Virus record (IMG/VR): IMGVR_UViG_3300025770_001492
Coordinates: 181,523-245,522 of that record
DNA length: 64,000 nucleotides
Direction: 5' to 3' (one strand)
Position numbers and translations under genes: made by a program. The notes beneath the pieces were generated by a model. That model did no database searches. It saw only the letters and a list, made by a program, of their open reading frames with translations, and was not told the origin of the DNA. This document shows positions 963-54,305 of this stretch, piece by piece (positions within the stretch are counted from its first letter, which is position 1; each line of letters opens with the position of its first letter).

Positions 963-1391
963 ATGAATTTTAAAGACTTTATTGTATCAGAAGAAGATAT
1001 GGCACCGATGGGAGACCCTATGGGCGGTGGAATGCCGATGGGAGACCCTATGGGCGGTGGAATGCCGATGGACCCTATGGGTGGAGCACCCCCAATGGAC
1101 CCTATGGGAGGGATGGGTGGAGGAGCACCCCCAATGGACCCTATGGGAGGGATGGGTGGAGGAGCACCAGGCGGCGTTCAACCACCAATACAATTTAAAC
1201 CTAATTCTGTTTGGGATGTTTTAGATAAAATATTAAATGGAGAGCCTGTTAACGATAAAGAAGATGAAGAAAAAGAAAAAGAAAAAGAAGTAGATCAATC
1301 TGGACAAGAAAATTTAGATATGTTAAGTTCCCCTCAACAGCAAGAACCGGGAATGGCCCCCACTGGTCAAGTTGAGAATCCTCAGCTTTAA
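963..1391 (+). CDS. Low-complexity Met/Gly/Pro protein with capsid-targeting-like N-terminus
   Basis: MNFKDFIVSEE start; PMDPMGG repeats; TAAATA 7 nt upstream. Confidence 0.7.
   Translation: MNFKDFIVSEEDMAPMGDPMGGGMPMGDPMGGGMPMDPMGGAPPMDPMGGMGGGAPPMDPMGGMGGGAPGGVQPPIQFKPNSVWDVLDKILNGEPVNDKEDEEKEKEKEVDQSGQENLDMLSSPQQQEPGMAPTGQVENPQL
1005..1168 (+). repeat. Coding tandem repeats (30-nt unit x2, then 39-nt unit x2)
   Basis: ccgatgggagaccctatgggcggtggaatg at 1005 and 1035; ggagcacccccaatggaccctatgggagggatgggtgga at 1083 and 1122. Confidence 0.9.
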
Positions 1392-11164: not shown

Positions 11165-11734
11165 ATGAAATTTAGAGAATTTTTACTAAACGAAGACAGC
11201 AAATATTTAAGTGAAAAAATAGGCGGTATTTTGAGCATATTGCACGCTACCCAAGAAGATAAAGACGGACTTGGGAGCAGAGACATTGAAACTTATGCAC
11301 AAAAAGTTATCAATCAAATAAAGCCAATTTTAAACATTTCAAAAGGATCGAAGGATGTGCAACGATCCCTTCAGAAAGTCGCAGTAGCAATATCAATTGC
11401 AATGGAAGAAAAAAAAGGAGACGAACTCTTGGACATTATGTCAAAATCTTCCCAAATTATAGAAAAATTGTTATCTGATATGGGAAGCCCGATTCAAGAT
11501 TTGGGAACCCCTCCTGAGGCCGGAAAGCCACAAGACCAAGATTCGGCACTTCAGCCTCCGATTGAACCAGAAACGCCAGAGCAGCCTCCTGTCGATCCCT
11601 CACAGCCTCAGCAACCTGCTCCTGTCGATCCCTCACAGCCTCAGCAACCTGCTCCTGTCGATCCCTCACAGCCTCAGCAACCTGCTCCTGTCGATCCAAG
11701 ACAAGCACAGCGGCTTTCTTTGCCACAAGGATAG
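11165..11734 (+). CDS. Hypothetical protein with capsid-targeting-like N-terminus and Pro/Gln tail
   Basis: MKFREFLLNED start; TATATA at 11135-11140. Confidence 0.7.
   Translation: MKFREFLLNEDSKYLSEKIGGILSILHATQEDKDGLGSRDIETYAQKVINQIKPILNISKGSKDVQRSLQKVAVAISIAMEEKKGDELLDIMSKSSQIIEKLLSDMGSPIQDLGTPPEAGKPQDQDSALQPPIEPETPEQPPVDPSQPQQPAPVDPSQPQQPAPVDPSQPQQPAPVDPRQAQRLSLPQG
11588..11697 (+). repeat. 33-nt coding tandem repeat (PVDPSQPQQPA), about 3.3 copies
   Basis: cctgtcgatccctcacagcctcagcaacctgct repeated. Confidence 0.9.
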
Positions 11735-18546: not shown

Positions 18547-19500
18547 TTAATATACAACTTTAGTTTCTTCTAAGATTTTATTACAACTTGAAATCATTTT
18601 TTTAGGATATTCTTTGTATTTTGTGATGTCCACTGGCCAGTCATCGTTCGATAGTCTTTTTTCCCCCATTAGAATTCCATTTAAGTATAAGCTTTTGGCT
18701 TTTTTATAATTTTTCATTTGATAGTAAATATCAGCCAGTAGACACCAAAACTCTGCCATTAACGGCCTTACCGCCAAGCACGGTAAAATTTGTTGAATTG
18801 ATTTTTTATAATCTTTTTCATGAGTTAAAAAAACAATTGCCATATAGTATTTCATCATGACGACTGATTTTCCTTGACCTTCTTGGAAAAGGTATCGGTT
18901 TGCTTCATTTATAAAATGTTCATACTCTCCCATTCGCAACAAGTTGCATGCTTTGTAGTAAATGGGACCTGATAGTGTGGGACTGTCTTTCATCCAATTT
19001 TCTACAATTTCAAGTTTCTCTTTAGGATTTTGAATTTCCTGCGAGAACACTACAACAGGTATCAGGTTCGAGCATTGTATGTCAACATGTTCGTGAACAG
19101 GGTTTTTGTACTTCAAGGATTTATCTTCATTCCATATTCGAACTTCTTTGGTTATGTTTTTATTTTGCATAACTTGAATTAAATACGCAGTAGAAGCGGC
19201 ATCTTCTTCGTTTAGCAACTGAATTTTGTCATGCCCTTTAACCAAGAACTCCCAAGGCTCTAGAAAAAATATCCATTTTGATTTTGTTTTTTCTATTAAT
19301 TTGTTTTTAGCCTTGCTGAAATCTTTTTCCCACTTAATTTTGTATATGTCGCAATTAAATTTTTTGCATATTTTTAAAGTGTCATCTGTGCTTCCCAAAT
19401 CTCCTATTACTATTTGGCAATCAATTGAAAATATAGATGTTAAGCATTTTTCTATAGTTTTACTATTGTTTTTTGTCAGCAGGCAGATCGACAACGACAT
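18547..19500 (-). CDS. GT2-family glycosyltransferase with TPR-like C-terminus
   Basis: SICLLTKN, DLGSTDDT, WEKDFSKAKN; DxD position reads LEPWE. Confidence 0.8.
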   Translation of the reverse strand: MSLSICLLTKNNSKTIEKCLTSIFSIDCQIVIGDLGSTDDTLKICKKFNCDIYKIKWEKDFSKAKNKLIEKTKSKWIFFLEPWEFLVKGHDKIQLLNEEDAASTAYLIQVMQNKNITKEVRIWNEDKSLKYKNPVHEHVDIQCSNLIPVVVFSQEIQNPKEKLEIVENWMKDSPTLSGPIYYKACNLLRMGEYEHFINEANRYLFQEGQGKSVVMMKYYMAIVFLTHEKDYKKSIQQILPCLAVRPLMAEFWCLLADIYYQMKNYKKAKSLYLNGILMGEKRLSNDDWPVDITKYKEYPKKMISSCNKILEETKVVY

Positions 19501-20904: not shown

Positions 20905-21417
20905 TTATTGTGTTATTATGTAAGCTCTGTCGTATCTTAAGGTTAATTCGCAAACCACATGTTCGGAATCACCATAATCTAAATCTCCAAAGTCTACGCT
21001 TTGAGGATATAGGTTTTCGTATCGCCATATTTCTATAGGGTCGCCACAGCCACTTAGCATTGAAAGGTCCCCATTCTTTTTGAATCCTTCATTTGGCACG
21101 TCCCATTCCCCATTGTTGTTTCCGCCAGGGTTGTATATCTCCTGAATCCAGCCAAATATTGGATGATATTGTTTTGCCAAATCATATAACACTAGTGTTA
21201 TAGGTTTCCAATCGGGTTTCACGGGGTAATATATTGTTTCATTTAGATGTTGAGCTTCCTGTTCTTTGAAGTCTATAGAGGGCCTAGCAGATTTACTTGG
21301 AGGCAATGAGTTAACGCCTGATTGAGATATTCCTGGTATAGAAAACTCCCATCTAAACTTTTGCTTCCAGCATAAGCTTTTTCTTTCAAGTCCAAAATCA
21401 AGTCCCATATTAGCCAT
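20905..21417 (-). CDS. Tail tube protein (T4 gp19-like), paralog 2
   Basis: KFRWEF, ARPSI, WKPITLVLYD, YPQSVDFGDLDY, LTLRYD. Confidence 0.88.
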   Translation of the reverse strand: MANMGLDFGLERKSLCWKQKFRWEFSIPGISQSGVNSLPPSKSARPSIDFKEQEAQHLNETIYYPVKPDWKPITLVLYDLAKQYHPIFGWIQEIYNPGGNNNGEWDVPNEGFKKNGDLSMLSGCGDPIEIWRYENLYPQSVDFGDLDYGDSEHVVCELTLRYDRAYIITQ

Positions 21418-22201
21418 TTTTGTATCCCAATTCTTGCATGTAAGTTTTTAATTTTGAGTATTTTTCAAACATCTCGTTTTTTCTTTTGTCGCCAAGTTTA
21501 AAATCTCTTTCATCATCTGGAGAAGCTTTATGGATAACTTTCCATTCTGAGATAAATTTATCTGTTTCAGTCGTTTTTAGTTCTCCTAAAAATCTTAAAA
21601 GATCGCAAATTATTTCTTCTTTTTCTTCATTGCTTTTTTGCGACAACTTATCTATTTGAAACAAAAAAGATTCATTATTGCTTTTGTAAAATTCATAAGA
21701 TTTTATCCAAAGATCTATCCATTCTTCTAGATTTTGTTTTTTTACAAAAGTATTTTTTTGAGATTCAAAGGATAAAAAAGGATCTCTAATGCAAACTATC
21801 CACTTTGCGTTGTTCCAAACTCTTTTAAGAGTCTCAACTTCTTTTTTTCTTGCGCATAGCCATAATGCTTTGTGCCCCCATTTTGTTTGTCCTGGTTTTT
21901 GATTTCCGTATCCTGAAATAAATTCATAAATCATTTTTCTCCAAATTGATTCACACCTTTGCGGATTACTACCGGAGTAGTGTGGAATTGCATAGTCTTT
22001 AACCGTTTTGCTCTTGTTTGATTTTTCCCCCCACTCTCCAGCTTGTATCATTTTATCAAGCCATTGTGTACTTTCTTTCCAAGATAACTTAGGCTCTTGC
22101 CCGTGTATGTATATGTTGGGGTGAGAGCATAAAAAAAATTGCATCCATGTGGTTCCACTTCGAGGCGGTCCAGTTATGACTATAGGGTTATCGTATTGCA
22201 T
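21410..22201 (-). CDS. Sulfotransferase-family protein
   Basis: 5'-PSB ITGPPRSGTT; 3'-PB CIRDPFLS. Confidence 0.85.
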   Translation of the reverse strand: MQYDNPIVITGPPRSGTTWMQFFLCSHPNIYIHGQEPKLSWKESTQWLDKMIQAGEWGEKSNKSKTVKDYAIPHYSGSNPQRCESIWRKMIYEFISGYGNQKPGQTKWGHKALWLCARKKEVETLKRVWNNAKWIVCIRDPFLSFESQKNTFVKKQNLEEWIDLWIKSYEFYKSNNESFLFQIDKLSQKSNEEKEEIICDLLRFLGELKTTETDKFISEWKVIHKASPDDERDFKLGDKRKNEMFEKYSKLKTYMQELGYKNG

Positions 22202-22214
22202 GTGTTTATATAGT

Positions 22215-22250
22215 AAAAAAAGCCTGTGTTTGAAAAAACACAGGCTTTTC
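22215..22250. terminator. Intrinsic terminator after tube paralog 1
   Basis: agcctgtgttt-gaaa-aaacacaggct flanked by A/T tracts. Confidence 0.8.
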
Positions 22251-22283
22251 TTATGGCCGGAAGTAAAACATGTTGTAGGAGTT

Positions 22284-22877
22284 CTAGCTAACTGTTCCTA
22301 GTACAGTTCCTCCAGATGTACCAGTACAAGGACCACAACAGCTTTGTGGCGTGTAACCAGGACAAACTGATCTATAATCAACCGAAGCATATCTCAACGT
22401 TAGCTCGATTGTTGACTCTTCGGAACTAGAATAGTCTAGTTCTCCAAAGTTCATGGCTGTTGGCCACATATCGTTCAATACCCAAGTTTCGAGAACGTTT
22501 CCACAACCGTCAAACAGGTTGAGCGTTCCACGACCAGAGTAGTGAATTCTTTGAGATCCCTGCTTAAGGGCGACAGGATCTGTAAATTCATAGACACTGG
22601 CAAGCCAGTTCCATAAAGGTGCGTTATCTATAGTAGCAACGTCATAGTATGTTACTGTAATTGTTTCCCAAGTCGCTTTGCCTGGAATAAAGGTCTTAGC
22701 GTTTTGGAAATTAATTTCCGTTTCTTCAATTGATAGGTTTGGTCTCGAAGCGATTTTAACAAAGTGTTCTTCAACGGATTGTCCACCGCAAATTTCATCT
22801 ACACGAAAAGTCCAACGGAACTTTCTCTTGAAGATCAATTGAGAACCACCTAATTTTCCAATTCCCATGTTTGCCAT
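22284..22877 (-). CDS. Tail tube protein (T4 gp19-like), paralog 1
   Basis: KFRWTF, SRPNL, WETITVTYYD, WPTAMNFGELDY, LTLRY; Cys-rich C-terminal tail. Confidence 0.92.
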   Translation of the reverse strand: MANMGIGKLGGSQLIFKRKFRWTFRVDEICGGQSVEEHFVKIASRPNLSIEETEINFQNAKTFIPGKATWETITVTYYDVATIDNAPLWNWLASVYEFTDPVALKQGSQRIHYSGRGTLNLFDGCGNVLETWVLNDMWPTAMNFGELDYSSSEESTIELTLRYASVDYRSVCPGYTPQSCCGPCTGTSGGTVLGTVS

Positions 22878-22963: not shown

Positions 22964-25321
22964 TTAGAACGTGTCAGCATTCTCTGCGAAGCTGCCAGTT
23001 CTGTGAACGCTGAATTCTATAAACATAAATTCAACGGCTCTTGTTGGTTGAACACCGATTCTCGCTCGGAACTCATTTCGATCTATTACATCTGGTGTGT
23101 TAAGCTCTTCATCGGCTTGGATGATGAAGTCGGTTAAACCACGACCAATTTGAACTTCTCTAAGAATTTCAGTTGAAATGTCAACAAATCTTTGTCTAAA
23201 GACTTCGTCATGTGGATCGAAAAGTAAACCTCTCGAAGCTTGTCTAATTCTCTTTTCAAGAACAAAGAGAAGCCTTCTGACATTAACACGATCCAGTGCT
23301 GTAGGTCTTCTTTGAAGAGTCTTTTGACCCCATACAAGGAAACCATCAAAATCGCTAAAGTTCACGATAGGATTAACAGCGTTTCTATTTCCGTACATTA
23401 AGTCTCTTTCTTCAAGAGTTGGACGGGAATAAACATCTGAAATTCCAGGAACGATACCACGATTTGCACCAGCGGGAGCAAACCAAGGTTCTGCTAATTG
23501 ATCACTTCTTGCATAAACTGCCATCACTGACCCAGATGGTGGAACCCAAACATCTACTCTATTGAAGTTGTCTCTTACCTTGACCCAAGGCCAGTAAAGA
23601 GCACCAAAGTCACTATCAAATCTAGTAGTGTTTAGAGGGTGAGCACCGTTCTGCCATTGAACTATTTCATCAACAGTTAGACCGAATGGTGGGTCTATCA
23701 ACGCCAGACAATCCTGTCTAAAGTTTTCACAAACGTCCAGCATAGCAAGAACGATTGATGTAGATGGATGACCTGGAACAGCAATCAAATCAATGTCGAT
23801 TTGCTCTGGCTCAGATAAGGCATAAAGCCCACTGTATGACAGAGAGTTTCCAATGATTAGAGCATCTTGATCGTCTGGATCTGATGGAATTCCATCACTA
23901 CCGCCTGCAAGGCTGTATGTTCCATCCAGTGGCGGTGCAAGAGTGGCTGTGTTGTCTTGAACACGAACCCAATCTGATACCAATGTCAGGAATGTTTCTA
24001 CGTAGAACCTACTAGAGGAATCTTTAACAAGGTTGCCCCAAGATTCTACTTGATTGGAATCATTGTAGACATCCATAGTGAAAACGCCTTCTCTAGTATC
24101 GTTTTTAATAACGACTTGAGTTGCGTTTCCATCAACACCAGCACTATCTGCTGTAAGGGTGAAACTGTTAGTACTGGCAACAGAGTTTCCAGTTACAATT
24201 CCGTATGTTTCAACAGCAGCATCTCCGCTTACACCAGATGGGCTTGCACCCTCTGCTGTGACACCATCAAAATCAAACAATGAAGCAGCGGTGCTTTCTG
24301 TTTTGATTAAGAGTCGTGCGTCTCGTCCGTGATGCAGAGTTTGAAGCGTTAGGTTGTCACCAGTTGCAACAGCTTCAAATCCGCCAGGAATATCTCCATT
24401 AGTAATTTGAAGATTGATTTCCGTTAGAACTTCAAGAGTTGTTTTTTCTGCACCTTCTAGAACGGCCAAGTCAACAACTTGAACCACATTGTCGATAAGA
24501 ACATTGTCTGTTCCGTCAACAACAATTAAAAGCTGAAGATTAGAAAGACCAGTGAAGTCCCATTCTCCTGGTCCTTGATATCCATCTACTGGATATCTGT
24601 CTTCGCCAGAAGTAGAAGCAGCAATAGTCATTCCTGTTCCTAGTCCTGTTACAGAACTAGAACCACCATAGATAGCATCTTGAACAGATACCAGTTCTAA
24701 AGAAGCGTCTGGTCCATATGCGAATGTGCTTTCGACTGCAATTCTATTTGATCCGTCGCATGTGAACTGAATTCCGTCAACTGTTGAATCGAGTTGATCA
24801 TTTAAAGCTTCTGCCAGATCTTCACATGTGTATGGGCCTGGTGTTGTTCTGTTGGCGTCTGCCAACACAACCAAAGTTTTAGATGCTAAAACTCCATTCA
24901 GTTTCCAGCGGAAAAATGAATCGTCGCCAAACGAATATGTTTCTGCTGTGTCTGATTGAATTATGATTTGACCACCTGCAACAGGTACGTCAAATTCAGC
25001 AGTAGTGGCACGTTCGTCACTGACTGCGTCTTGGTCGCCAACTCTAACTACGTATAGTTCGTTAGCAACTAATAAATATTGCTCGGCAGCGTAAATCAAG
25101 TAGGGATCACCACTCTCAGGATGTGGATATCCAAATACTGTGTGTAGTTCTCTACTTGTTCTCACAACAGTAGGAATATTAATTGGGCCTTTACTTGCAA
25201 ACCCAACTAATCCTGCTCTGTGAAAAGACTGCTCAGGAGCAATAAAAGATAAATCTTTTTCAGCAATTCGAACGCTTGGTGAAATTGTGTTCGAAGGCGG
25301 AAATCCCCTTAATATCGCCAT
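22964..25321 (-). CDS. Contractile tail sheath protein (T4 gp18-like)
   Basis: SPSVRIAEKDLS, LYWPWVKV, VPPSG, WFAPAG, GQKTL, RVNVRRL, PTRAVEF. Confidence 0.95.
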   Translation of the reverse strand: MAILRGFPPSNTISPSVRIAEKDLSFIAPEQSFHRAGLVGFASKGPINIPTVVRTSRELHTVFGYPHPESGDPYLIYAAEQYLLVANELYVVRVGDQDAVSDERATTAEFDVPVAGGQIIIQSDTAETYSFGDDSFFRWKLNGVLASKTLVVLADANRTTPGPYTCEDLAEALNDQLDSTVDGIQFTCDGSNRIAVESTFAYGPDASLELVSVQDAIYGGSSSVTGLGTGMTIAASTSGEDRYPVDGYQGPGEWDFTGLSNLQLLIVVDGTDNVLIDNVVQVVDLAVLEGAEKTTLEVLTEINLQITNGDIPGGFEAVATGDNLTLQTLHHGRDARLLIKTESTAASLFDFDGVTAEGASPSGVSGDAAVETYGIVTGNSVASTNSFTLTADSAGVDGNATQVVIKNDTREGVFTMDVYNDSNQVESWGNLVKDSSSRFYVETFLTLVSDWVRVQDNTATLAPPLDGTYSLAGGSDGIPSDPDDQDALIIGNSLSYSGLYALSEPEQIDIDLIAVPGHPSTSIVLAMLDVCENFRQDCLALIDPPFGLTVDEIVQWQNGAHPLNTTRFDSDFGALYWPWVKVRDNFNRVDVWVPPSGSVMAVYARSDQLAEPWFAPAGANRGIVPGISDVYSRPTLEERDLMYGNRNAVNPIVNFSDFDGFLVWGQKTLQRRPTALDRVNVRRLLFVLEKRIRQASRGLLFDPHDEVFRQRFVDISTEILREVQIGRGLTDFIIQADEELNTPDVIDRNEFRARIGVQPTRAVEFMFIEFSVHRTGSFAENADTF

Positions 25322-25325
25322 AGTG

Positions 25326-25547
25326 TTATTCTCCCTTACTCAATTTGTCTGATATTTTTCGTGTTGAAATCAAGCCATCTTGTTCTGCTTTGTCAACATA
25401 ATCTGTTTTTCTTTCGTCTGCTAAGAATCTAACATTTTGATTTTTACCAATTCCAGGAATGTTAAGGCATGTGAAAGAGTTAGTTTTTTTCGTAGAACGA
25501 ACTACTAACTGTACCGGCCATCTTTTCTTATTGGTTATTTCAATCAT
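25326..25547 (-). CDS. Hypothetical tail-region protein
   Basis: 73-aa ORF coupled between gp15-like and sheath genes. Confidence 0.6.
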   Translation of the reverse strand: MIEITNKKRWPVQLVVRSTKKTNSFTCLNIPGIGKNQNVRFLADERKTDYVDKAEQDGLISTRKISDKLSKGE

Positions 25548-26536
25548 GATAATTCCTCAACAGCATCTTCTAGCCTATTGAATACCTCAGTAATTTCTTC
25601 TTGCTTGGTGCTGTTGAAAATATTTGTTTTAGTTTTCAACACTGCCTTGCGTCTAGTAATAGGCTGAGGTATATATGTTTCAGCCGTCAGATTAAATTGA
25701 TATTTTACAACTCTAATGTTTTGATCTCCTGGTTCAACGTCTAAATTGTTAGCTATTGAATCTAGTTTTACCCCCGTTTCCCACGGGACTCCTCGTACTT
25801 TTATATATGCAATTGGACTAAATTTCAAAAGTAATTGCTCTATAATTTGATTCATGTCCTCAATGTATAGGGTCCACGCATACAGGGTGAAGCCAACATC
25901 AATCGGAATCCCCCTTGCAGTCCCAAACACAGTATCTCTCTCATGCTTTTCATTCGTTGTAAATCCAGGCTTTCTGTCTGGTCTGTATCTTCTCATCCAA
26001 TCTAGGGCTTTGTGATATGTGTATCTGTCTTGATTGAATTGCAAATCTGATGAGTATATTGCGAGCATAGGGAGCTTGATTCTGTCTACGACTAGACTGT
26101 TGTCTTTTCTAACATTGTCCTGCATCATTGCTGCAACAGCCCTTTCTTGCGATGCCCAAATGATTGGAACGGGATGAGACTTTCCATCCTCATCGATTAC
26201 GACTATATCTTCAAAGAGTTGCTTGACCGCTTCGTCTGCACCTCTTAGCCCTTTTGCATATCTAACTATTGTGTTTCTATCTGGGTTGTCTAAGTCATTT
26301 ACAATATTCCCGCTTTGCATCGGGTCGCAGTTTGCCGATTCTCCAATGCCGGTTTTCTTGTTGCTTGCATCTTCTAGCCAACTCACATCAGTTCTGTCAT
26401 TGATCGATCTATCGTGTTCATCTGCACAATATTCTGGTGGTACATCATTCAAAATGCTTGCCTGTTTAATTGGCTTCTCATTGCATTCGTTTAATGATTT
26501 TTGATTTTGATTTCCTGAGTTGATTATTTTTGCCAT
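25544..26536 (-). CDS. Tail sheath stabilizer/terminator (T4 gp15-like)
   Basis: VPIIWASQER, IKLPMLAI, PIDVGFTL, MNQIIEQLLLKFSP, FNLTAETY. Confidence 0.8.
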   Translation of the reverse strand: MAKIINSGNQNQKSLNECNEKPIKQASILNDVPPEYCADEHDRSINDRTDVSWLEDASNKKTGIGESANCDPMQSGNIVNDLDNPDRNTIVRYAKGLRGADEAVKQLFEDIVVIDEDGKSHPVPIIWASQERAVAAMMQDNVRKDNSLVVDRIKLPMLAIYSSDLQFNQDRYTYHKALDWMRRYRPDRKPGFTTNEKHERDTVFGTARGIPIDVGFTLYAWTLYIEDMNQIIEQLLLKFSPIAYIKVRGVPWETGVKLDSIANNLDVEPGDQNIRVVKYQFNLTAETYIPQPITRRKAVLKTKTNIFNSTKQEEITEVFNRLEDAVEELS

Positions 26537-26577: not shown

Positions 26578-27423
26578 ATGAGAATCCAAATGGATAAATT
26601 AGAAATTAAATATAGAACATATTTCAAAGGAGTTCCTCCCAAGAAGATTAAACTCAAGATACCAGGCTGGTCTGGGAGCAAGGAACATGGCGATGGGTCA
26701 AAACCTCAGCCTTGGCACTGTGTTCCATTTGTCGAAGGGTCTACTTATGGTTTGGAATTGATTTATCCATTTGAGACGGAATGTGTAGTTACAAAAAAAG
26801 ATGGAAAAATTAAATTTTTAGGAGACTTTTCCAATGAGTCTCCTTGGAGCGAAAGCGGAGATCCTCCATTTTCATCCTTTGCGCAGGACCACTATGGGTT
26901 CACGTCCTCTTTAAATTTAAAACCTCCCGAAGGGTTCTCAATTAGAATCGAACCACACCCTAGATTTTTCACAGATACTTCTGGCACAGTTCCTATTGCT
27001 GTGCCAGGGCATATACAGAGGTGGTGGCCAAGAATATTTTTTGTAGTTTTTAAATCTCCAAAAGAAGGAGAAAAGCATATATTTAAATGTGGAGAGCCTT
27101 ATGCAAGTTTGTTAGTTGTTCCAAGCAAGATTGATTACGATCTTAAGAAGATGAGCGAAAAAGAAGTTAATTCTATGAATTTGCGTGATAGTAGAATTGT
27201 AAATTCAAAAAAAAGTATTTGCAAACATAATTGGCATGACCATGTTGGAAACAATTTTGATGACAAGTATAAACAGTTGAATAAAATATGCGGCATTCAC
27301 GGGGAAGAACATTTAGACGAATACTTAAGAAGCATCCAGTGCCCTAAAAGAAATACTAAGTTAATAGGAAATTTTGTAAAAGTAAAAAATGAGACACTTC
27401 AAAATAAAAAAAAGAAAAAATAG
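26578..27423 (+). CDS. Hypothetical protein, DUF6065-like
   Basis: WHCVPFVEGSTYGLELIYP and FKCGEPYASLLVVP resemble DUF6065 as recalled. Confidence 0.5.
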   Translation: MRIQMDKLEIKYRTYFKGVPPKKIKLKIPGWSGSKEHGDGSKPQPWHCVPFVEGSTYGLELIYPFETECVVTKKDGKIKFLGDFSNESPWSESGDPPFSSFAQDHYGFTSSLNLKPPEGFSIRIEPHPRFFTDTSGTVPIAVPGHIQRWWPRIFFVVFKSPKEGEKHIFKCGEPYASLLVVPSKIDYDLKKMSEKEVNSMNLRDSRIVNSKKSICKHNWHDHVGNNFDDKYKQLNKICGIHGEEHLDEYLRSIQCPKRNTKLIGNFVKVKNETLQNKKKKK

Positions 27424-27541
27424 GAAACCAGTTTTTATATGGGGAAATAGAGGAAGTCTGGCCAATCCAAAATTTCCTAGAATAATTTTTTGGAAGATTA
27501 ACAAGCCAGAATTTTTTGTTGAATTTACATTTAAAAATTAA
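27389..27541 (+). CDS. Possible 50-aa basic peptide (not in ORF track)
   Basis: MRHFKIKKRKNRKPVFIWG...; fills an otherwise empty gap. Confidence 0.35.
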   Translation: MRHFKIKKRKNRKPVFIWGNRGSLANPKFPRIIFWKINKPEFFVEFTFKN

Positions 27542-28170
27542 GCAGCTTGTTTCATTGCTTGAGCATATGAAATAATTGTTTCTGCATCCGTGTCTTCGGG
27601 TAAATGTTTCTCTAAGTTCATGACATGCTTTTTAAGACTCTCAATATCTACTACTGAAAACAAACCAAATGCATCTTCCATGTCTTTTGGTCTGCCTGTT
27701 GTGAGTTTCATAATCGCAAGCACAGACGGATCTGCTACTTTAAATTTTACTCCTCCAATGCTTGCCGTTTGAGATGTGTCCATTAAATATTTATTCAAAC
27801 CTGCGTTGCCAACATTTGCGTCTAAAAAGTCAGCATCTAACTCTGGTGCCTGTATTCCTCCAAAATCGTTTCCCGTAAGTGGAGCGTGAATCATGTTGTT
27901 TCTTCCAAGGGCTTCTTTGACTTTTTCTATATTATCTGTTAAAAAATCAACGTCAGTTTTATTTGGTCGATCTATATGATGATGGCTGTATGCCATACCT
28001 CCAATCAATACCCCAGATAGTTGGTTGTCTACTATAAATTGCATTGCACTTTGTGTTTTCTTCAAAGCGTCTGGATTTTGAATTGCCATCTCTTTGTATA
28101 AACTTTTTGAATCAAACAAAAAAGAAGTTGACAAATCTACTTGAGATTCTATAAAATTTCTAAAACTCAT
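27538..28170 (-). CDS. Nucleotidyltransferase (AbiEii/DUF6036-like) with capsid-targeting-like N-terminus
   Basis: LIGGMAY...RPNKTDVDFL and KLTTGRPKDMED; starts MSFRNFIES. Confidence 0.75.
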   Translation of the reverse strand: MSFRNFIESQVDLSTSFLFDSKSLYKEMAIQNPDALKKTQSAMQFIVDNQLSGVLIGGMAYSHHHIDRPNKTDVDFLTDNIEKVKEALGRNNMIHAPLTGNDFGGIQAPELDADFLDANVGNAGLNKYLMDTSQTASIGGVKFKVADPSVLAIMKLTTGRPKDMEDAFGLFSVVDIESLKKHVMNLEKHLPEDTDAETIISYAQAMKQAA

Positions 28171-28712
28171 TGTCCAAACTCATTTATCTTAAAATCGGGT
28201 TTCTTTTGAGTAACCTTGCCTTCTCCTGTTGTCGTAGATTCTTGGAATCTTTGACATAAGATTTGCAGACGAAGCGAACCCCATAGCTTGTATTCGCCTG
28301 TCATTCTTTGAACGATAACCCAGTCCTCACGCAAGTGGGGGGTATGTAATCTGGACCCTATTTTTGGAGGATGTCCGATCTGTCTGAGTACGGATTTATA
28401 ATTAAATTCAAACATCATCTCGTCGGGAGAGTCAAAACCAAACGCACTCATGTAATTCTGTGAAGGAATGGGTTCATATATCCCGTAAAGTTGTATAGGG
28501 TTGTTAGAGAAAATCTTTCCTCTATCTTCCCAATACAAAGGGTCAACAGTTCCAGACTGGATAAACACTTCATGATAAAGGATGGGAGATCCGCCCATGC
28601 GTATAATTTCCTCGTCCCACATGTTGAAAAGATCATGTTCTGGGTTTTCTGGGTCAAATTGTTGAATGTCTCCAACAGGCTTGTAAGGCGTTCCGTCTTG
28701 ATTTCTTAACAT
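28167..28712 (-). CDS. Neck/head-closure protein (T4 gp14-like)
   Basis: EIIRMGGSPILY, DPLYWED, FGFDSPDEM, PKIGSRL; start trimmed to MLRNQ. Confidence 0.8.
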   Translation of the reverse strand: MLRNQDGTPYKPVGDIQQFDPENPEHDLFNMWDEEIIRMGGSPILYHEVFIQSGTVDPLYWEDRGKIFSNNPIQLYGIYEPIPSQNYMSAFGFDSPDEMMFEFNYKSVLRQIGHPPKIGSRLHTPHLREDWVIVQRMTGEYKLWGSLRLQILCQRFQESTTTGEGKVTQKKPDFKINEFGQ

Positions 28713-28717
28713 GAAAG

Positions 28718-28723
28718 TATATA
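28718..28723. promoter_or_regulatory. Palindromic TATATA, candidate bidirectional late -10 box
   Basis: Exactly 5 nt from the ATG at 28712 (-) and 5 nt from the ATG at 28729 (+). Confidence 0.6.
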
Positions 28724-28728
28724 TGATT

Positions 28729-28950
28729 ATGAGTAGCAAAACAGTTCAAAGAAGAAGACACTTGGCAAAAGCTGTGACTTGGAGAATTATAGCCACGTCC
28801 ACAACGTTTGTAGTTAGCTGGATTTTTACCAACGATGTAAAATTTAGTGCAGGAATCGCAACTATAGATTCTTTTCTAAAGTTTTTCTTTTACTACTTTC
28901 ATGAAAGAACTTGGCTTAAGTCCAAGTGGGGCATTATAGAAAGGAAATGA
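28729..28950 (+). CDS. DUF2061 small membrane protein
   Basis: HLAKAVTWRIIAT...FYYFHERTW. Confidence 0.85.
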   Translation: MSSKTVQRRRHLAKAVTWRIIATSTTFVVSWIFTNDVKFSAGIATIDSFLKFFFYYFHERTWLKSKWGIIERK

Positions 28951-29336
28951 TCATGTTGACCCTTGGGTACTTTGCAATAGCTATACTTGCAATTAGTCAT
29001 TGGCTACAGGTCTGGAAAATTCACAAACACAAGGAAGTCAGAGATATATCTGTTTGGACTTATGTGTTTTTGCTTTGTGGATATTTCATACTGGCTACAA
29101 AAGCTTATTTAGACTATTCTCAAGGTAATGGCGACATTCTTTGGTTTTTTAGACAAATGGCCACCATTGCACCTGTTTCAATTGTGATATTCCAGATTCG
29201 GTTCCACAGGAAAGATCGCTGGCATGACGATCTAGACCCATATTGTGCTGGTTGCGGGCAAGAAATGGAACTAGATTGGGAACATTGCCCTTGGTGCTCT
29301 TGTAGCGACAGGCATCGCATCAAGATTAAGTCTTAG
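28947..29336 (+). CDS. PQ-loop/SemiSWEET-like membrane protein with C-terminal zinc ribbon
   Basis: WLQVWKIHKHKEVRDIS, three TM segments, CAGC...CPWC. Confidence 0.65.
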   Translation: MIMLTLGYFAIAILAISHWLQVWKIHKHKEVRDISVWTYVFLLCGYFILATKAYLDYSQGNGDILWFFRQMATIAPVSIVIFQIRFHRKDRWHDDLDPYCAGCGQEMELDWEHCPWCSCSDRHRIKIKS

Positions 29337-29338
29337 GC

Positions 29339-30478
29339 TTACATGTAGCGATAGTCTGGCAACTTATCCGACATGCTCAATGCTTGTGCAATTACTTGGT
29401 GCATGTCATAATACATATAGCTCCCAAGGCGACCCCCAAGAATAATGTTGCTTTCTTTAGCTTGCTTTTTGTATTTTTCATATATTTTAACATTCTTAGA
29501 ATCCCTCACAGGATAATATGGAGTTTTACTTTTGTCATATGTGTCTGGGTATTCATGAGTGATTACACTTTTTTTACTTTCTTTAAATTCGAAATGTTTG
29601 TGTTCAACAATTCTTGTATAAGGGATGTCCTCATCTGTGTAATTCATAACAGAGCACCCTTGAAAGTTTCCGTTCTTTGCAAATTGGTTGTTATTTCCGA
29701 ATTCCGAAACAATTTCATGAGAAAACTTTAAAGATCTGTATTCCAACTCTCCATGTCTATAGTCAAAAAGTTTATCAGGCATTCCTGTGAATATTATTTT
29801 CTTTGCAGCAGAATCTAATTCTTTTCTGTTCTCAAAGTAATCTACATTTGTTTGAATTTCAATTTTTTCATGATCAATCATGTTTTCAAACATGGCAGTA
29901 TATCCATTGGATGGTATGCCTTGATACTTGTCGTTGAAATACCTGTCGTCATAGTTTAAACGAATTGGTAGTCTTTTTATTATGAAACTAGGAAGTTCTG
30001 AAGGTGGTCTTCCCCACTGTTTGGTTGTATATCCCTTTACAAATTTTTCGTATAATTCTTCCCCCACCTGAGAAAGAATCCAATCTTCTAAGTTTGGATT
30101 AGATTTGCTGCAAGGGATTTTAACCTCTTCCAACCGTTCAGCCGCTGCTCCAGGAGTTTGAACTCCCCAAAGCTGATTTAAAGTTAGAAGGTTAATTGGA
30201 AATGAAAAGACTTGTCCATTTGACTTAACTCTTCCGTGATGTTGATATCCGTTAAATTCAGAGAATCTATTTACAAATTTCCAAACCTTATTGTTGTTGG
30301 TGTGGAATATATGAGGGCCATATTTGTGAACATTAATTCCTTCAATGTTTTCAGTGTAGCAATTACCGCCAATATGATTTCTTTTGTCTATTACTAAAGA
30401 TGAATGCCCCCTCTCCGCAGCATTTCTTGCGAACACACTTCCAAATAAACCAGATCCTATAATTAAAAAGTCATACAT
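29339..30478 (-). CDS. glf: UDP-galactopyranose mutase
   Basis: GSGLFG, HIGGNCY, YGPHIFHT, YTTKQWG, YQGIP, PYYP, GRLGSYMYYDMHQ. Confidence 0.96.
   Translation of the reverse strand: MYDFLIIGSGLFGSVFARNAAERGHSSLVIDKRNHIGGNCYTENIEGINVHKYGPHIFHTNNNKVWKFVNRFSEFNGYQHHGRVKSNGQVFSFPINLLTLNQLWGVQTPGAAAERLEEVKIPCSKSNPNLEDWILSQVGEELYEKFVKGYTTKQWGRPPSELPSFIIKRLPIRLNYDDRYFNDKYQGIPSNGYTAMFENMIDHEKIEIQTNVDYFENRKELDSAAKKIIFTGMPDKLFDYRHGELEYRSLKFSHEIVSEFGNNNQFAKNGNFQGCSVMNYTDEDIPYTRIVEHKHFEFKESKKSVITHEYPDTYDKSKTPYYPVRDSKNVKIYEKYKKQAKESNIILGGRLGSYMYYDMHQVIAQALSMSDKLPDYRYM

Positions 30479-32544: not shown

Positions 32545-32548
<4 letters not shown>
32375..32548 (-). CDS. 57-aa basic peptide with capsid-targeting-like N-terminus (not in ORF track)
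   Basis: GTG start: MNFRKWIEGE...FGKKKKKKKRNKK; overlaps both neighbours. Confidence 0.7.
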
Positions 32549-35532
<2,984 letters not shown>

Positions 35533-35583: not shown

Positions 35584-36477
35584 ATGAGTAATTGTAGTAA
35601 TAATACTTTAGTTATTGGTCGTCCAACCAAAAATGCTATGGCGTCAACCCAGTGTTCTTCTGCTTGTTCCGATTTAGGACATGTAGACCCTTTGAATAAG
35701 AACGAATTGGGTCCACGTAAAAATAGGGACAAAGTCAGAGAACAAATTAGGGATTACATCCTCCACATGATGGGTGCGCCTGCTATTAAGCTTGAGTGTG
35801 ACGAGCAAAATGTAGATTTTGCTATAGATCAAGCTTTAAAAATAGTAGAGGATTACGCTCCAAGAGAGTTTTTTAGTTATTATGTGTTTTTAACTACGCC
35901 CGGAAAAAGTGTTTATGAGATGCCGCCTGATGTAGGGTATGTCAGAAATGTATTTTACAAAGAGCAAGGAACATTCGGGTTTCAGGCATCTGATTTAGAC
36001 GGCGCAATACCTATTGAATACTTTTATCCTGGCGGTAGCTACGCATCTATCCAAGGCGGACTAATTGATCCCATCCAGCCAATTTGGGGACGAATGGGAG
36101 AGTGGGTTTTATACAAACAGTACGAACAGATGTACTCAAGAACAAGTTCGAATTTAGGAGGCTGGGAGTGGGTTGGAGGATATAGAAATATTAAACTTTA
36201 CCCAATTCCTTACAAATCCTCGCAAGTTATTGTTCATTACATGGAAAAGTGTAAAGACTGGCAAGAGGTTACTCAAGCAATGCAAGAAGGTGCTTTAACC
36301 TATCTTAAAGAAATAGTAGGCAGAATAAGGTCTAAATATCCAGCACCTCCTGGACCTGGTGGCGGTATGCAATTGGATGGACAGTCTCTCATTCAAGAGG
36401 CAAGAGAAGATCGCCAAAAATGGTTTGAAGATTTAATTTACAAATTTGGAGACATACTCCCAATTAATTTGGATTGA
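35584..36477 (+). CDS. Neck/adaptor protein (T4 gp13-like)
   Basis: MGAPAIKLECDEQNVDFAIDQAL; PGPGGGMQLDGQSL. Confidence 0.85.
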   Translation: MSNCSNNTLVIGRPTKNAMASTQCSSACSDLGHVDPLNKNELGPRKNRDKVREQIRDYILHMMGAPAIKLECDEQNVDFAIDQALKIVEDYAPREFFSYYVFLTTPGKSVYEMPPDVGYVRNVFYKEQGTFGFQASDLDGAIPIEYFYPGGSYASIQGGLIDPIQPIWGRMGEWVLYKQYEQMYSRTSSNLGGWEWVGGYRNIKLYPIPYKSSQVIVHYMEKCKDWQEVTQAMQEGALTYLKEIVGRIRSKYPAPPGPGGGMQLDGQSLIQEAREDRQKWFEDLIYKFGDILPINLD

Positions 36478-36992
36478 TAAATATGGATTTTAAAAATTGG
36501 TTAAAACTGGAAAGTATTGACGAGAACACTTCCTTATCTGAGTGGTTTGAGAGCAACCTGTCGGAAGCAAAAGGAACCAGATATAGTGTAGAAGTCAACT
36601 ACAGGAGCAAAGCATCAGAAGCTTTGGACGCCTTTGCTAAGATTGCACTAGGTTATGTGAGTGCAGCTATGAAGAAAAACGATTACCACGTTAAGCATGT
36701 GTTTGATGAAAATCCAATGAGAATATTGGTGTCAAGTAGAAACTGGGACGATGGTGAATGGGTAGGTGTAGTTCACTTTAACCCAGATCACGGGTGTTTT
36801 GTTATATCTAAGAGCTTTTACAATAAATTAAGAAAGACAGTTTCCTTAAAAGGAAGTAAAAAATGCAGCGGAGACTCTGCGTCTGAAATAGCAAAAGATT
36901 TAAAGAATCTAATGCATTCTTTAAAAGATAAACCCGATAGACATAAAGAAAAGCTAAAGAGCGTTCCTTTGAAGCGTGGGCCTAAAAGATAA
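36474..36992 (+). CDS. Hypothetical protein with capsid-targeting-like N-terminus
   Basis: MDFKNWLKLESIDE...LSE...LSE. Confidence 0.65.
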   Translation: MINMDFKNWLKLESIDENTSLSEWFESNLSEAKGTRYSVEVNYRSKASEALDAFAKIALGYVSAAMKKNDYHVKHVFDENPMRILVSSRNWDDGEWVGVVHFNPDHGCFVISKSFYNKLRKTVSLKGSKKCSGDSASEIAKDLKNLMHSLKDKPDRHKEKLKSVPLKRGPKR

Positions 36993-37417
36993 TGCATATT
37001 TCGTTTATCAATTGGCTAGAGAACAGAAAATTGGATAACAGGGACACAGAGAAAACTGCTGGAATATTTTTTACTAATGGCAAAAAGGTTTTATTGCTTC
37101 AAAAACCAAACAAGAAGTGGCAATTGCCTGGGGGTCATGGAAAAAAAGGAGAAACCGCTCATGAAACCGCAAAAAGAGAATGTCTAGAAGAATGCGGAAG
37201 TGTAGAGGGTAAAAGTTTAGGATCAATAAAAAACGACAACTGGACTGCCTTCTTCTATAAAGTTGAAAAACTTTTTGACTGCAATTTAAGCGATGAGCAC
37301 ATAGACTGGGAATGGACTGACTTGGACAAGATCAAAGATATCAATTTGACAAAAAAGTTTAAAATCAATTTAGAAGAACATTTGAAATTTTTAAAATCCT
37401 TGAGAGAACGCTTTTGA
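36992..37417 (+). CDS. Nudix hydrolase
   Basis: GGHGKKGETAHETAKRECLEECG; starts MHISFINWLEN. Confidence 0.92.
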   Translation: MHISFINWLENRKLDNRDTEKTAGIFFTNGKKVLLLQKPNKKWQLPGGHGKKGETAHETAKRECLEECGSVEGKSLGSIKNDNWTAFFYKVEKLFDCNLSDEHIDWEWTDLDKIKDINLTKKFKINLEEHLKFLKSLRERF

Positions 37418-38008
37418 TGGAACCTGCTTTAGCTCAGGTATTCGAACAGCAATGTTATTCCAGTTTGTTTTGACCCAATTCATAAACTTGGCCTCAGCTT
37501 GTCTTGGTCCTGTTTCGTCTGTTCTTCCGAGAGTTTGTCTCTCTAATTCGTGTGTTGCTTCATGAACTATTGTGCTTGCTATTTCTAAAATAGCTTCAAG
37601 ACTATCTCCATGTTCCTGAACATGCCTTCTTATGTTGACCCGAATAGTGTCAGACGGATTGATTTGATTTAGATCTATGTCTGGAACATATTGCTTAATT
37701 ACCACATTGGGAATGCTATTTATTTTATTTGAATTCATCACATCGTCTCCAAATCTCATTCTTAATTTGTTTAGGACGGAAGATCCAATTTGTTTTTTAT
37801 CTTCAGAAGATGTATAAAGCCCATAAGCTCCAGAGTTCAGCGTTGCTATTGTGCTTATGTTTGCCAGCAAAGACTGATTAGTCATTGAATCGTACATCCT
37901 GACCAGTTTTACAGCATATTTAGCTTTGTCATAGGCTGCATCTATCTGAGATTCGTCAACATCTTCGGTGCCTATTGTGTTTAATTCGAGCCAATTTTTA
38001 AAATTCAT
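37391..38008 (-). CDS. HExxH zincin-like metallopeptidase with capsid-targeting-like N-terminus
   Basis: TIVHEATHELE...QAEAK; starts MNFKNWLELN; TAAATA 5 nt upstream. Confidence 0.65.
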   Translation of the reverse strand: MNFKNWLELNTIGTEDVDESQIDAAYDKAKYAVKLVRMYDSMTNQSLLANISTIATLNSGAYGLYTSSEDKKQIGSSVLNKLRMRFGDDVMNSNKINSIPNVVIKQYVPDIDLNQINPSDTIRVNIRRHVQEHGDSLEAILEIASTIVHEATHELERQTLGRTDETGPRQAEAKFMNWVKTNWNNIAVRIPELKQVPSKAFSQGF

Positions 38009-46177: not shown

Positions 46178-46840
46178 ATGAAAAAGTCTAAAAACAAAAT
46201 CATGAAACCAACGAAAGTTTTGCCGCCTTTGATTTTTGGATTTTTGTTTTCATTGTTTATAATATCTCTAATTCTAAAAACGACCAATGATTACAGTTAT
46301 CCAGAGAGTTATCTTGTCAAAGACTTCCCTCTACTGGAGCAACCAGATCAAATAACATGCGGCCCAACCAGTTGCGCCATGCTGATAAATCATTATGGTC
46401 ACGAAGTCACAATACAAAGTGTAAGCAAAGAAACTAAAACAAAGTGGATTTCTTACAAGAACGAAAACATAGGAATGACATCGCCAGACTATATCCAAAT
46501 AGCCTTGAAAAAATTTGGCATTAGATCAAAAGTTAAAACAGGAAACTTAGACCAACTTGAACACTACGTGAGCCAAGATAGGTTGCCAATTGTTTTACTT
46601 AGGAGCGGAGAGAAAACGTGGCACTATGTAGTCGCCATGGGATACAATGATAAAGAAGTATTTCTCGCAGATCCTGGTTGGGGAGAAGTGAGAAAAATCA
46701 AAAATGAAGTTTTCCTAAGATCTTGGGAATTCGCAGGGGACATGCGAGGAAACACCCTCCCGACTGACGATGTAATTTCTTTTTTGGTGCTAATGGCAGA
46801 CGTTCAGAAGAAAACTATGATAGTACCGGATAAGCAATGA
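46178..46840 (+). CDS. C39-family cysteine peptidase with N-terminal TM segment
   Basis: QPDQITCGPTSCAM, WHYVV, ADPG. Confidence 0.88.
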   Translation: MKKSKNKIMKPTKVLPPLIFGFLFSLFIISLILKTTNDYSYPESYLVKDFPLLEQPDQITCGPTSCAMLINHYGHEVTIQSVSKETKTKWISYKNENIGMTSPDYIQIALKKFGIRSKVKTGNLDQLEHYVSQDRLPIVLLRSGEKTWHYVVAMGYNDKEVFLADPGWGEVRKIKNEVFLRSWEFAGDMRGNTLPTDDVISFLVLMADVQKKTMIVPDKQ

Positions 46841-54005: not shown

Positions 54006-54305
54006 ATGTTGAATTTTAGAGAATTTATTTTAAACGAAAACTACCAATTTCATGATGTAGAGATTGCAAATATGTACATGCATCAACCAAGCTTAAAGGT
54101 TAAAGAAATATCTGAAAAAACTGGGAAATCTGTAGCTGAAATATATAGAGTACTTCAGAGAAGCGGCATGCCTGCGAACAGAATGCCTATCAACCACGAA
54201 TCTGTCTTTTCTCTCTCTGACGCTGGGTTTAATGTAAGACATATTGCAGAACTAACTGGATATACACCTAGAAACATTAGGTACATATTGAAAAAAGGAA
54301 ACTAA
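54006..54305 (+). CDS. Double-HTH protein with capsid-targeting-like N-terminus
   Basis: MLNFREFILNE; VKEISEKTGKSVAEIYRVL; VRHIAELTGYTPRNIRYIL; TAAATA 7 nt upstream. Confidence 0.75.
   Translation: MLNFREFILNENYQFHDVEIANMYMHQPSLKVKEISEKTGKSVAEIYRVLQRSGMPANRMPINHESVFSLSDAGFNVRHIAELTGYTPRNIRYILKKGN

Follow-up and report, generated by a model that had tools for sequence, protein, structure and literature searches.

What is a nucleotidyltransferase (NTase) with a toxin-like fold doing directly behind a neck gene of a huge phage? The question is raised by a gene at positions 27538..28170, on the minus strand, of a 64,000-nucleotide stretch of viral DNA (hereafter the window), which is the final 64 kb of the 245.5-kb IMG/VR viral contig IMGVR_UViG_3300025770_001492. 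CheckV puts the completeness of this contig at 49%, which implies a huge phage with a genome of roughly 500 kb, and the locus recurs in near-identical form in at least 16 seawater/marine DNA runs from 2012 to 2025; the phage is widespread and marine. NTases of the MenT and AbiEii type are bacterial toxins of toxin-antitoxin and abortive-infection systems, i.e., weapons against phages. Here, such an anti-phage toxin fold is solitary, is found only in phage-like contexts, and carries an N-terminal leader that resembles the capsid-targeting sequence (CTS) of phage T4. What is new is that huge phages combine a solitary MenT1-like NTase and a T4-like leader system, the toxin fold and the T4 CTS being known already. 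The reading developed here, which as a whole we put slightly below an even chance, is that the leader would direct the NTase into the capsid and be clipped off, and that the enzyme would then be ejected and modify RNA 3′ ends.

The gene encodes 210 aa from an ATG start (taken from the ORF list), and it was correctly noted in the original prediction that its product starts with MSFRNFIES and that its start overlaps the stop codon of the upstream reading frame; the strand can now be added. The two motifs pointed out there were located in an alignment of 53 homologous sequences and in a structural model, namely GG...R...DVD as G57-G58 (motif I), R68 and D73-V-D75 (motif II; residues 57-75, 27946..28002) and K...RPKD..D as K155, R160-P-K-D163 and D166 (residues 155-166, K-L-T-T-G-R-P-K-D-M-E-D, 27673..27708), all encoded on the minus strand. 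Invariant in the alignment are G57, D73, D75, G105, D114, L151, K155, and D166, and at least 90% conserved are G58, R68, R160, K162, and D163, so that by conservation the motifs are not chance occurrences. Among the invariant residues, D114 (within D-A-D, residues 112-114, 27829..27837, minus strand) lies on a predicted strand and is a candidate third metal-binding carboxylate, a role suggested by the canonical layout of Pol-beta NTases. Compared with an 89%-identical orthologue in a close relative (L003, 8001-8636), the gene has a dN/dS of 0.14 and is, on this codon comparison, under purifying selection. By its catalytic signature, the protein is an intact NTase of the Pol-beta superfamily, with activity predicted.

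The family to which the NTase belongs is small: a set of 5.8 billion proteins contains 12 clusters of it (clustered at 90% identity), and a set of 1.8 billion contains 55 representatives at E < 1e-3. In Pfam, the window protein scores above the gathering cut-offs of two families of the NTP_transf clan, yet weakly so, with 26.8 bits for DUF6036 (cut-off 23.6, E = 5e-6) and 22.5 bits for DUF2204 (cut-off 20.3, E = 1e-4). Each of these models matches 43 of the 53 family members, and the AbiEii/DUF1814 model (PF08843) weakly matches two (best E = 5e-4) and leaves the window protein unmatched at E <= 1. Searches of PHROGs, NCBIfam, and PADLOC with the NTase gave no match, as did a tblastn search against 50,697 deposited phage genomes. 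Among PDB chains, sequence and profile searches returned nothing significant (best 5uvd, E = 0.57) and did not recover the MenT chains.

The relation to MenT toxins emerges at the level of the fold. The model that AlphaFold produced from the alignment of 53 sequences (pLDDT 93.8, pTM 0.89) places the GG at a strand-to-helix turn (E53-56/H57-64), DVD on strand E74-78, and D114 on strand E113-117. The Foldseek comparison, proposed earlier as a check, put MenT1 of Mycobacterium tuberculosis on top as the best solved structure (E = 5e-6, TM 0.61/0.68), and VIA-align aligned the two with a Z-score of 15.7 and an rmsd of 2.9 Å over 166 of 184 residues (NTase residues 33-202), with lower scores for TM1012 (10.8), MenT3 (10.4), ANT(2'')-Ia (10.0), and MenT4 (8.1). 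The nearest clusters in AFDB are named "Nucleotidyltransferase family" or "AbiEii/AbiGii toxin family", the latter name being found on nine of the best 30 (TM 0.5-0.64), while the BFVD library of viral structures contained distant matches only (TM at most about 0.5). MenT1 adds CMP to the 3′-CCA ends of tRNAs, for which it depends on D41, K137, and D152, whereas T39 is a regulatory phospho-acceptor and D43 and D149 make metal and ribose contacts (PMC10435456, PMC11375011). The family pattern T-P-D73-x-D75, K155 and D163-x-x-D166 parallels MenT1 T39/D41/D43, K137 and D149-x-x-D152, where equivalence of residues was judged by motif order and fold and not by residue-level superposition. MenT1 (Rv0078A), a short member of the MenT/AbiEii group, and the window protein share an NTase sheet lobe followed by a C-terminal helical bundle and are of similar size (about 190 and 210 aa). 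They differ in that their identity is 16-20%, that the window NTase falls outside PF08843 by HMM, is phage-encoded and solitary with no MenA-like antitoxin, has 32 extra N-terminal residues including the leader, and in the window's clade bears a Lys at the phospho-acceptor position. The label AbiEii/MenT-type that had been given to the protein is thus upheld for the fold, with MenT1 as the closest solved structure, but not for the sequence family; the protein is DUF6036/DUF2204 by sequence and MenT1-like by predicted fold. That it is an active MenT1-like NTase is a prediction in which we have high confidence.

What the enzyme would act on is less certain, and tRNA, the substrate of MenT1, is the single most obvious candidate for the NTase, although we consider it doubtful as a specific assignment. 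A different acceptor is conceivable, since the structural neighbors ANT(2'')-Ia and LnuA (an aminoglycoside and a lincosamide NTase; Z 9.4-10) would fit a transfer onto a signal molecule or antibiotic, and an MNT-like AMPylation of a host HEPN toxin would be a transfer onto protein; moreover, the DUF2204 and DUF6036 families have no assigned substrate, and no literature on their function was found. This rival is nevertheless improbable, because the Z-score of 15.7 for MenT1, against about 10 for these neighbors, comes from a near full-length alignment that includes the helical lobe, because no HEPN or other partner gene lies near the NTase in any locus examined, and because of the lack of a PADLOC or NCBIfam match. 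The more specific candidate of a HEPN-MNT antitoxin NTase, which should have a HEPN toxin gene next to it and show the minimal MNT fold (about 130 aa), was rejected, as there is no HEPN neighbor, no MNT chain among the 50 structural matches listed, and no PADLOC match.

The solitary state of the NTase extends to its homologues. All seven homologue neighborhoods examined are phage-like, consisting of long co-directional arrays of small ORFs, one of them on a contig of 269 kb. An all-vs-all comparison of the regions within 4 kb on either side across eight divergent loci found no conserved neighbor besides the NTase itself, and hence no antitoxin and no HEPN partner, which agrees with the earlier remark that no antitoxin gene is adjacent and widens it to the homologue loci. 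Homologues at 82-100% identity keep the order gp14, NTase, convergent ORF, gp15, whereas those at 35-52% identity are found among accessory genes (RNA ligase, RlaP, ArdC-N, methylases, Lar, HNH).

The first eight codons of the NTase (M-S-F-R-N-F-I-E; 28147..28170, minus strand) form a T4 CTS-like leader that ends in Glu and lies outside the region aligned to MenT1 (residues 33-202). Its pattern can be written as Met, one or two residues, an aromatic residue, a basic residue or amide, an acidic residue or amide, a second aromatic residue, and Ile or Leu, the two aromatic residues thus being spaced i and i+3; in the NTase it takes the form M-x-F-[RK]-x-F-I-E. Among the 327 ORFs of the contig, the strict form of this motif occurs at five first starts, against 0.10 expected and a maximum of two in shuffled sequences, and at none of 1244 internal Met positions; a loose form occurs at 10 first starts (0.43 expected). 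Applied unchanged to LR756511, a 595-kb relative that served as a replicate, the loose motif was found 12 times against 0.97 expected (maximum of five in 1000 shuffles), or on 19 ORFs if alternative starts are counted, with many of these leaders reading MKTF[KNR][DEQ][FW]. The leader is therefore enriched at ORF starts more than 10-fold over chance in both genomes. A Glu follows at +2 to +5 after the second aromatic residue in 27 of 30 leader-bearing ORFs, compared with a background of 23-24% (Fisher p = 3e-14), and Glu was not part of the search pattern.

Within one genome, the leader-bearing proteins have no detectable similarity to each other. Between the contig and LR756511, the leader or a near-variant is kept in six of seven orthologous pairs (29-66% identity), and the interchange of F, W, and Y and of K and R within it indicates that selection acts on the peptide and not on the nucleotides. 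Of the 53 members of the NTase family, 13 bear the leader, while the others have 0-28 unrelated residues ahead of a conserved F-D-S core. That the leader is a genuine signal shared by unrelated proteins is, on these grounds, very probable.

In the window, further leader-bearing ORFs are found at 963..1391 (plus strand, 142 aa, MNFKDFIVSEE, no Pfam domain), 11165..11734 (plus strand, 189 aa, MKFREFLLNED, with an LR756511 orthologue that starts MEFKKFLITEQ), 37391..38008 (minus strand, 205 aa, MNFKNWLEL, no Pfam domain), 36474..36992 (plus strand, 172 aa as mechanically called, MDFKNWLKLES from the fourth codon, with a 66%-identical leader-bearing LR756511 orthologue that reads MLNFKDYVEE), and 54006..54305 (plus strand, 99 aa, MLNFREFILNE, with a leader-bearing LR756511 orthologue and weak, sub-threshold HTH matches only). 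A 995-aa protein encoded at 32545-35532 (minus strand) has the leader-like start MIDISFSKFIEGVE, and its syntenic 1039-aa counterpart in LR756511 (L001, 2078-5197, plus strand) reads MLKFKEFLDNS from an internal ATG; neither contains a Pfam domain, and the two may be large internal or ejection proteins. In four leader-bearing genes (contig positions 46395, 171905, 182485, which is window 963, and 219530, which is window 38008), the element (C)ATAAATA(A) ends 4-7 nt upstream of the ATG. The element resembles the late-promoter box of T4, and mRNAs started from it at this distance would be nearly leaderless; the idea that it is a general late promoter of structural genes was rejected, as it precedes 22 of 340 ORFs, but not the sheath gene or gp15.

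The T4 internal proteins likewise share a short leader at their N-termini although they are otherwise unrelated. In the T4 record NC_000866, IPII and IPIII start with MKTYQEFIAE and IPI with MKTFKEF. The first 10 residues of IPIII suffice for loading into the head, residues 4 and 7 being the main determinants of targeting and residues 8 and 10 those of processing, and the T4 protease gp21 cleaves after Glu (PMC9026906, PMC5694885). F3 and F6 of the NTase match residues 4 and 7 with an offset of one residue and are followed by I7 and E8, which is a similarity only, and in most leaders of the window's phage the first aromatic residue is one position nearer to the Met than in T4. Genes for gp13, gp14, gp15, and sheath of the T4 type occur in the phage lineage, and in LR756511 a prohead protease of this type (Peptidase_S77, E = 7e-28) and a paralogue of it were found as well, with T4 itself matched as the positive control. 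In T4 as in the huge phages, the proteins concerned occupy hypervariable positions; the T4 internal proteins are small, basic, and DNA-associated, whereas here the putative cargo is an enzyme whose fold resembles that of a toxin. For the capsid-targeting tag named in the original prediction, what stands is a real signal, shared by unrelated proteins, followed by Glu, and similar to the leaders of the T4 internal proteins; that it directs capsid loading is a tentative proposal, to which we give not quite an even chance.

The genomic position of the NTase bears on whether it is cargo or a native part of the neck region. The slot lies between a gp14-type neck gene (28167..28712, minus strand, 181 aa from its ATG, the mechanical ORF reaching a TTG at 28739) and, at its downstream edge, a gene for a gp15-like tail sheath stabilizer/terminator (25544..26536, minus strand; Pfam T4-gp15_tss, E = 3.5e-19; PHROG 227), which is followed by the tail sheath gene (22964..25321, minus strand; Pfam Phage_sheath_1 and Phage_sheath_1C; PHROG 23, E = 9e-78). 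The upstream gene had been called gp14-like, which holds at the level of the fold; folded from 18 orthologues (pLDDT 71.5), its product has as Foldseek top match the T4 portal-neck-tail complex 9mkb_0 (E = 1.7e-7) with the T4 gp13/gp14 assemblies 9lu4-7, after which come neck proteins of other phages. The protein has no Pfam match (the T4 neck-protein model included) and no PHROG match, a neighboring Atlas cluster carries PF11649, and the LR756511 orthologue is 63% identical. In LR756511, gp14 is directly followed by gp15, and no NTase homologue exists anywhere in its 595 kb. Among 39 gp15-bearing IMG/VR loci, the gap between gp14 and gp15 is 87-208 nt in 11, and the NTase is confined to the window's clade. 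In other relatives, the position just downstream of gp14 is taken by different small ORFs with the leader-like starts MKNFNEWRE, MKKFNEWREE, MEFAKFKNWLDQ, and MNFYKL; in one of them (L064, 4109-4941; gp14 88% identical), a 76-aa ORF that starts MKNFNEWRE stands at the position of the NTase, and a 201-aa ORF overlaps its end. A Pfam search of the alternative cargo in the slot, including both of these ORFs, yielded no informative domain. A slot that is empty or variable in relatives and holds the NTase only in the window's clade marks the latter as lineage-specific cargo and not a native neck gene, so that its supposed membership in a neck operon has to be given up.

Convergent to the NTase in the same slot is a 281-aa ORF (26578..27423, plus strand; 0.97 to DUF6065 clusters in the Atlas feature search), which ends in a poly-Lys tail. 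About a dozen related loci contain this DUF6065-like ORF but no NTase, and it is not near the distant NTase homologues; it was thus ruled out as a partner of the NTase and is a separate, more widespread insertion. Between the window and L003, dS is 0.44 for the NTase and 0.32 for the DUF6065-like ORF, two to three times the 0.13-0.17 of gp14 and gp15 on either side. The NTase would accordingly have had a history of its own, and the raised values of both inserted genes suggest that cargo alleles are exchanged by recombination between related phages. A selfish or decaying passenger gene, of no present use to the phage, would agree with the absence of the NTase from many relatives, which makes it dispensable for the virion, and with its faster evolution (89% amino-acid identity to the orthologue vs 98% for the flanks). 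However, the low dN/dS, an intact frame with all catalytic positions conserved, and the recurrence of the near-identical locus in the seawater runs make such a passenger very improbable.

Proteins loaded into the head have to be made late, and the arrangement with gp14 is pertinent in this respect. The ATG of the NTase overlaps the gp14 stop codon by 4 nt (ATGA, 28167-28170), which suggests that its translation is coupled to that of gp14, and, if so, the NTase would be synthesized late together with structural proteins. No convincing terminator was seen between the two genes, and in each of two RNA-type libraries one contig, without differences from the window, spans the junction (28088-28309 and 28105-28325), which is too little to establish transcription. 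Classical operon signals were discarded as evidence, since sigma-70-like promoter matches are no commoner than in shuffled sequence.

The main rival to a packaged NTase is an accessory enzyme that stays inside the cell in which it is made and serves the restoring or remodelling of RNA 3′ ends (such as repair of tRNAs attacked by host nucleases) or another counter-defence, with the leader acting in translation initiation on mRNAs with short leaders, in another localization or assembly process, or in regulated turnover. The company of the distant homologues speaks for this, as their arrays contain an RNA ligase (L007), RlaP and a PheRS-like gene (L009), Lar and Pyr_excise (L013), and ArdC-N, HNH, and methylase genes (L006-L008). 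RlaP and CCA-adding enzymes are template-independent Pol-beta NTases that large phages encode and that have RNA 3′ ends as their targets, and jumbo phages use such NTases, RlaP among them, for RNA-end repair (PMC7824862). The phages are also rich in tRNA genes, of which the half-complete contig has six and LR756511 has 63, and the ATAAATA element directly ahead of four leader genes means that the 5′ cassette could be an expression signal. Against this rival, the leader is conserved by residue class and in its Glu, which points to selection at the peptide level; the RNA-repair genes lie kilobases from the NTase homologues, with no conserved linkage to an RNA ligase or others; the window NTase lacks a RlaP Pfam match; the best structural match is a tRNA-blocking toxin, whereas CCA-adding repair enzymes reach a Z-score of about 6 and align with the N-terminal lobe only; and in the window's phage the NTase appears coupled to a late neck gene. 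We regard the unpackaged accessory enzyme as possible, with a substantial minority share of the probability; the transfer onto a protein or small molecule is less likely, and the passenger gene least likely of the three.

Several observations weigh against packaging and RNA modification by the NTase. Its packaging, the cleavage of its leader, and its enzymatic activity are inferences from sequence and predicted structure. The leader motif is not confined to head proteins in T4, where a control search also hit genes 61.1 and 57B as well as a few cases that are probably due to chance, so that the resemblance of the leaders is suggestive and not diagnostic, and the same finding favors the accessory-enzyme rival. 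Gene 61.1 (18966-19130) starts MKTFKEFIKED and gene 57B (73952-74410) starts MMEFKDF; neither is known as a head protein, and 57B adjoins ipI. The Glu of the NTase leader directly follows F-I, which differs from the L/I-x-E arrangement of IPIII (I-A in T4), and neither a prohead protease (Pfam gp21) nor a major capsid protein (gp23) was matched on the contig, which is 49% complete. A packaged protein must be present late, whereas the arrays around distant NTase homologues look early or non-structural, and the RNA-library contigs that bridge the junction could be carry-over of DNA. As to the enzyme itself, the absence of an AbiEii/DUF1814 match and the K71-T72 of the window's clade at the position matching the MenT phospho-acceptor, compared with T71-P72 in most family members, count against a MenT-like enzyme. 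Finally, a tRNA-blocking toxin that is injected at the start of infection would endanger the translation of the phage's own genes.

With these points in mind, the pathway of a packaged NTase can be laid out as follows. The leader would dock the NTase into the assembling prohead, where a T4-type prohead protease would clip it off after Glu8, and the mature NTase would enter the next host along with the ejected DNA. In this host, it might transfer nucleotides onto the 3′ end of RNA, most likely onto the acceptor ends of tRNAs, in the service of host takeover or counter-defence. The concept has a precedent in T4 Alt, an ADP-ribosyltransferase that enters the head by means of propeptides and, once injected, modifies components of the host (PMC9026906, PMC5694885); Alt had been cited as a parallel in the original prediction, and the comparison is an analogy only, because Alt differs from the window NTase in fold and chemistry and is not homologous to it. 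If the NTase is packaged, the phage itself would deliver the enzyme, and its sequestration in the capsid would replace an antitoxin. Extended to the group, the proposal is that huge marine phages with a T4-type neck and tail load about 10-20 diverse and rapidly exchanged leader-bearing cargos, that the slot behind gp14 serves for the exchange of such cargo, and that in the window's lineage an NTase, sequestered in the capsid and then injected, modifies RNA 3′ ends of the host right at the onset of infection; in this general form we consider it possible and rather less than probable. If true, the capsid-targeting principle of T4 would extend to genomes of around 500-600 kb, of which no description was found in the literature searched, and the term "capsid targeting sequence" was absent from the huge- and jumbo-phage papers listed. 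The leader would then provide a simple sequence rule by which candidate injected proteins (about 10-20 ORFs per genome) could be nominated in uncultured huge phages.

A few further features of the locus may be mentioned. The 64-kb window contains no tRNA genes, all six of the contig lying outside it, and the tRNA genes called by ARAGORN in LR756511 include one with a CTA anticodon, labeled as amber-reading tRNA-Pyl, and another for which a four-base anticodon was called. An inserted trio, which is not at this position in LR756511, separates the gp14-like gene from the next gene that is conserved, namely a UDP-galactopyranose mutase gene (29339-30478, minus strand; TIGR00031, E = 1e-114) and, adjoining it, genes for a SemiSWEET/PQ-loop-like membrane protein (28926-29336, plus strand) and a DUF2061-like ORF (28711-28950, plus strand), which together may form an auxiliary module of sugar metabolism. 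In the close relative L003 (13304-15297), a sulfotransferase-like gene (263 aa; Pfam Sulfotransfer_3) stands between two gp19-like tail-tube genes, and the syntenic region of the window (20905-22877, minus strand) has ORFs of matching sizes.

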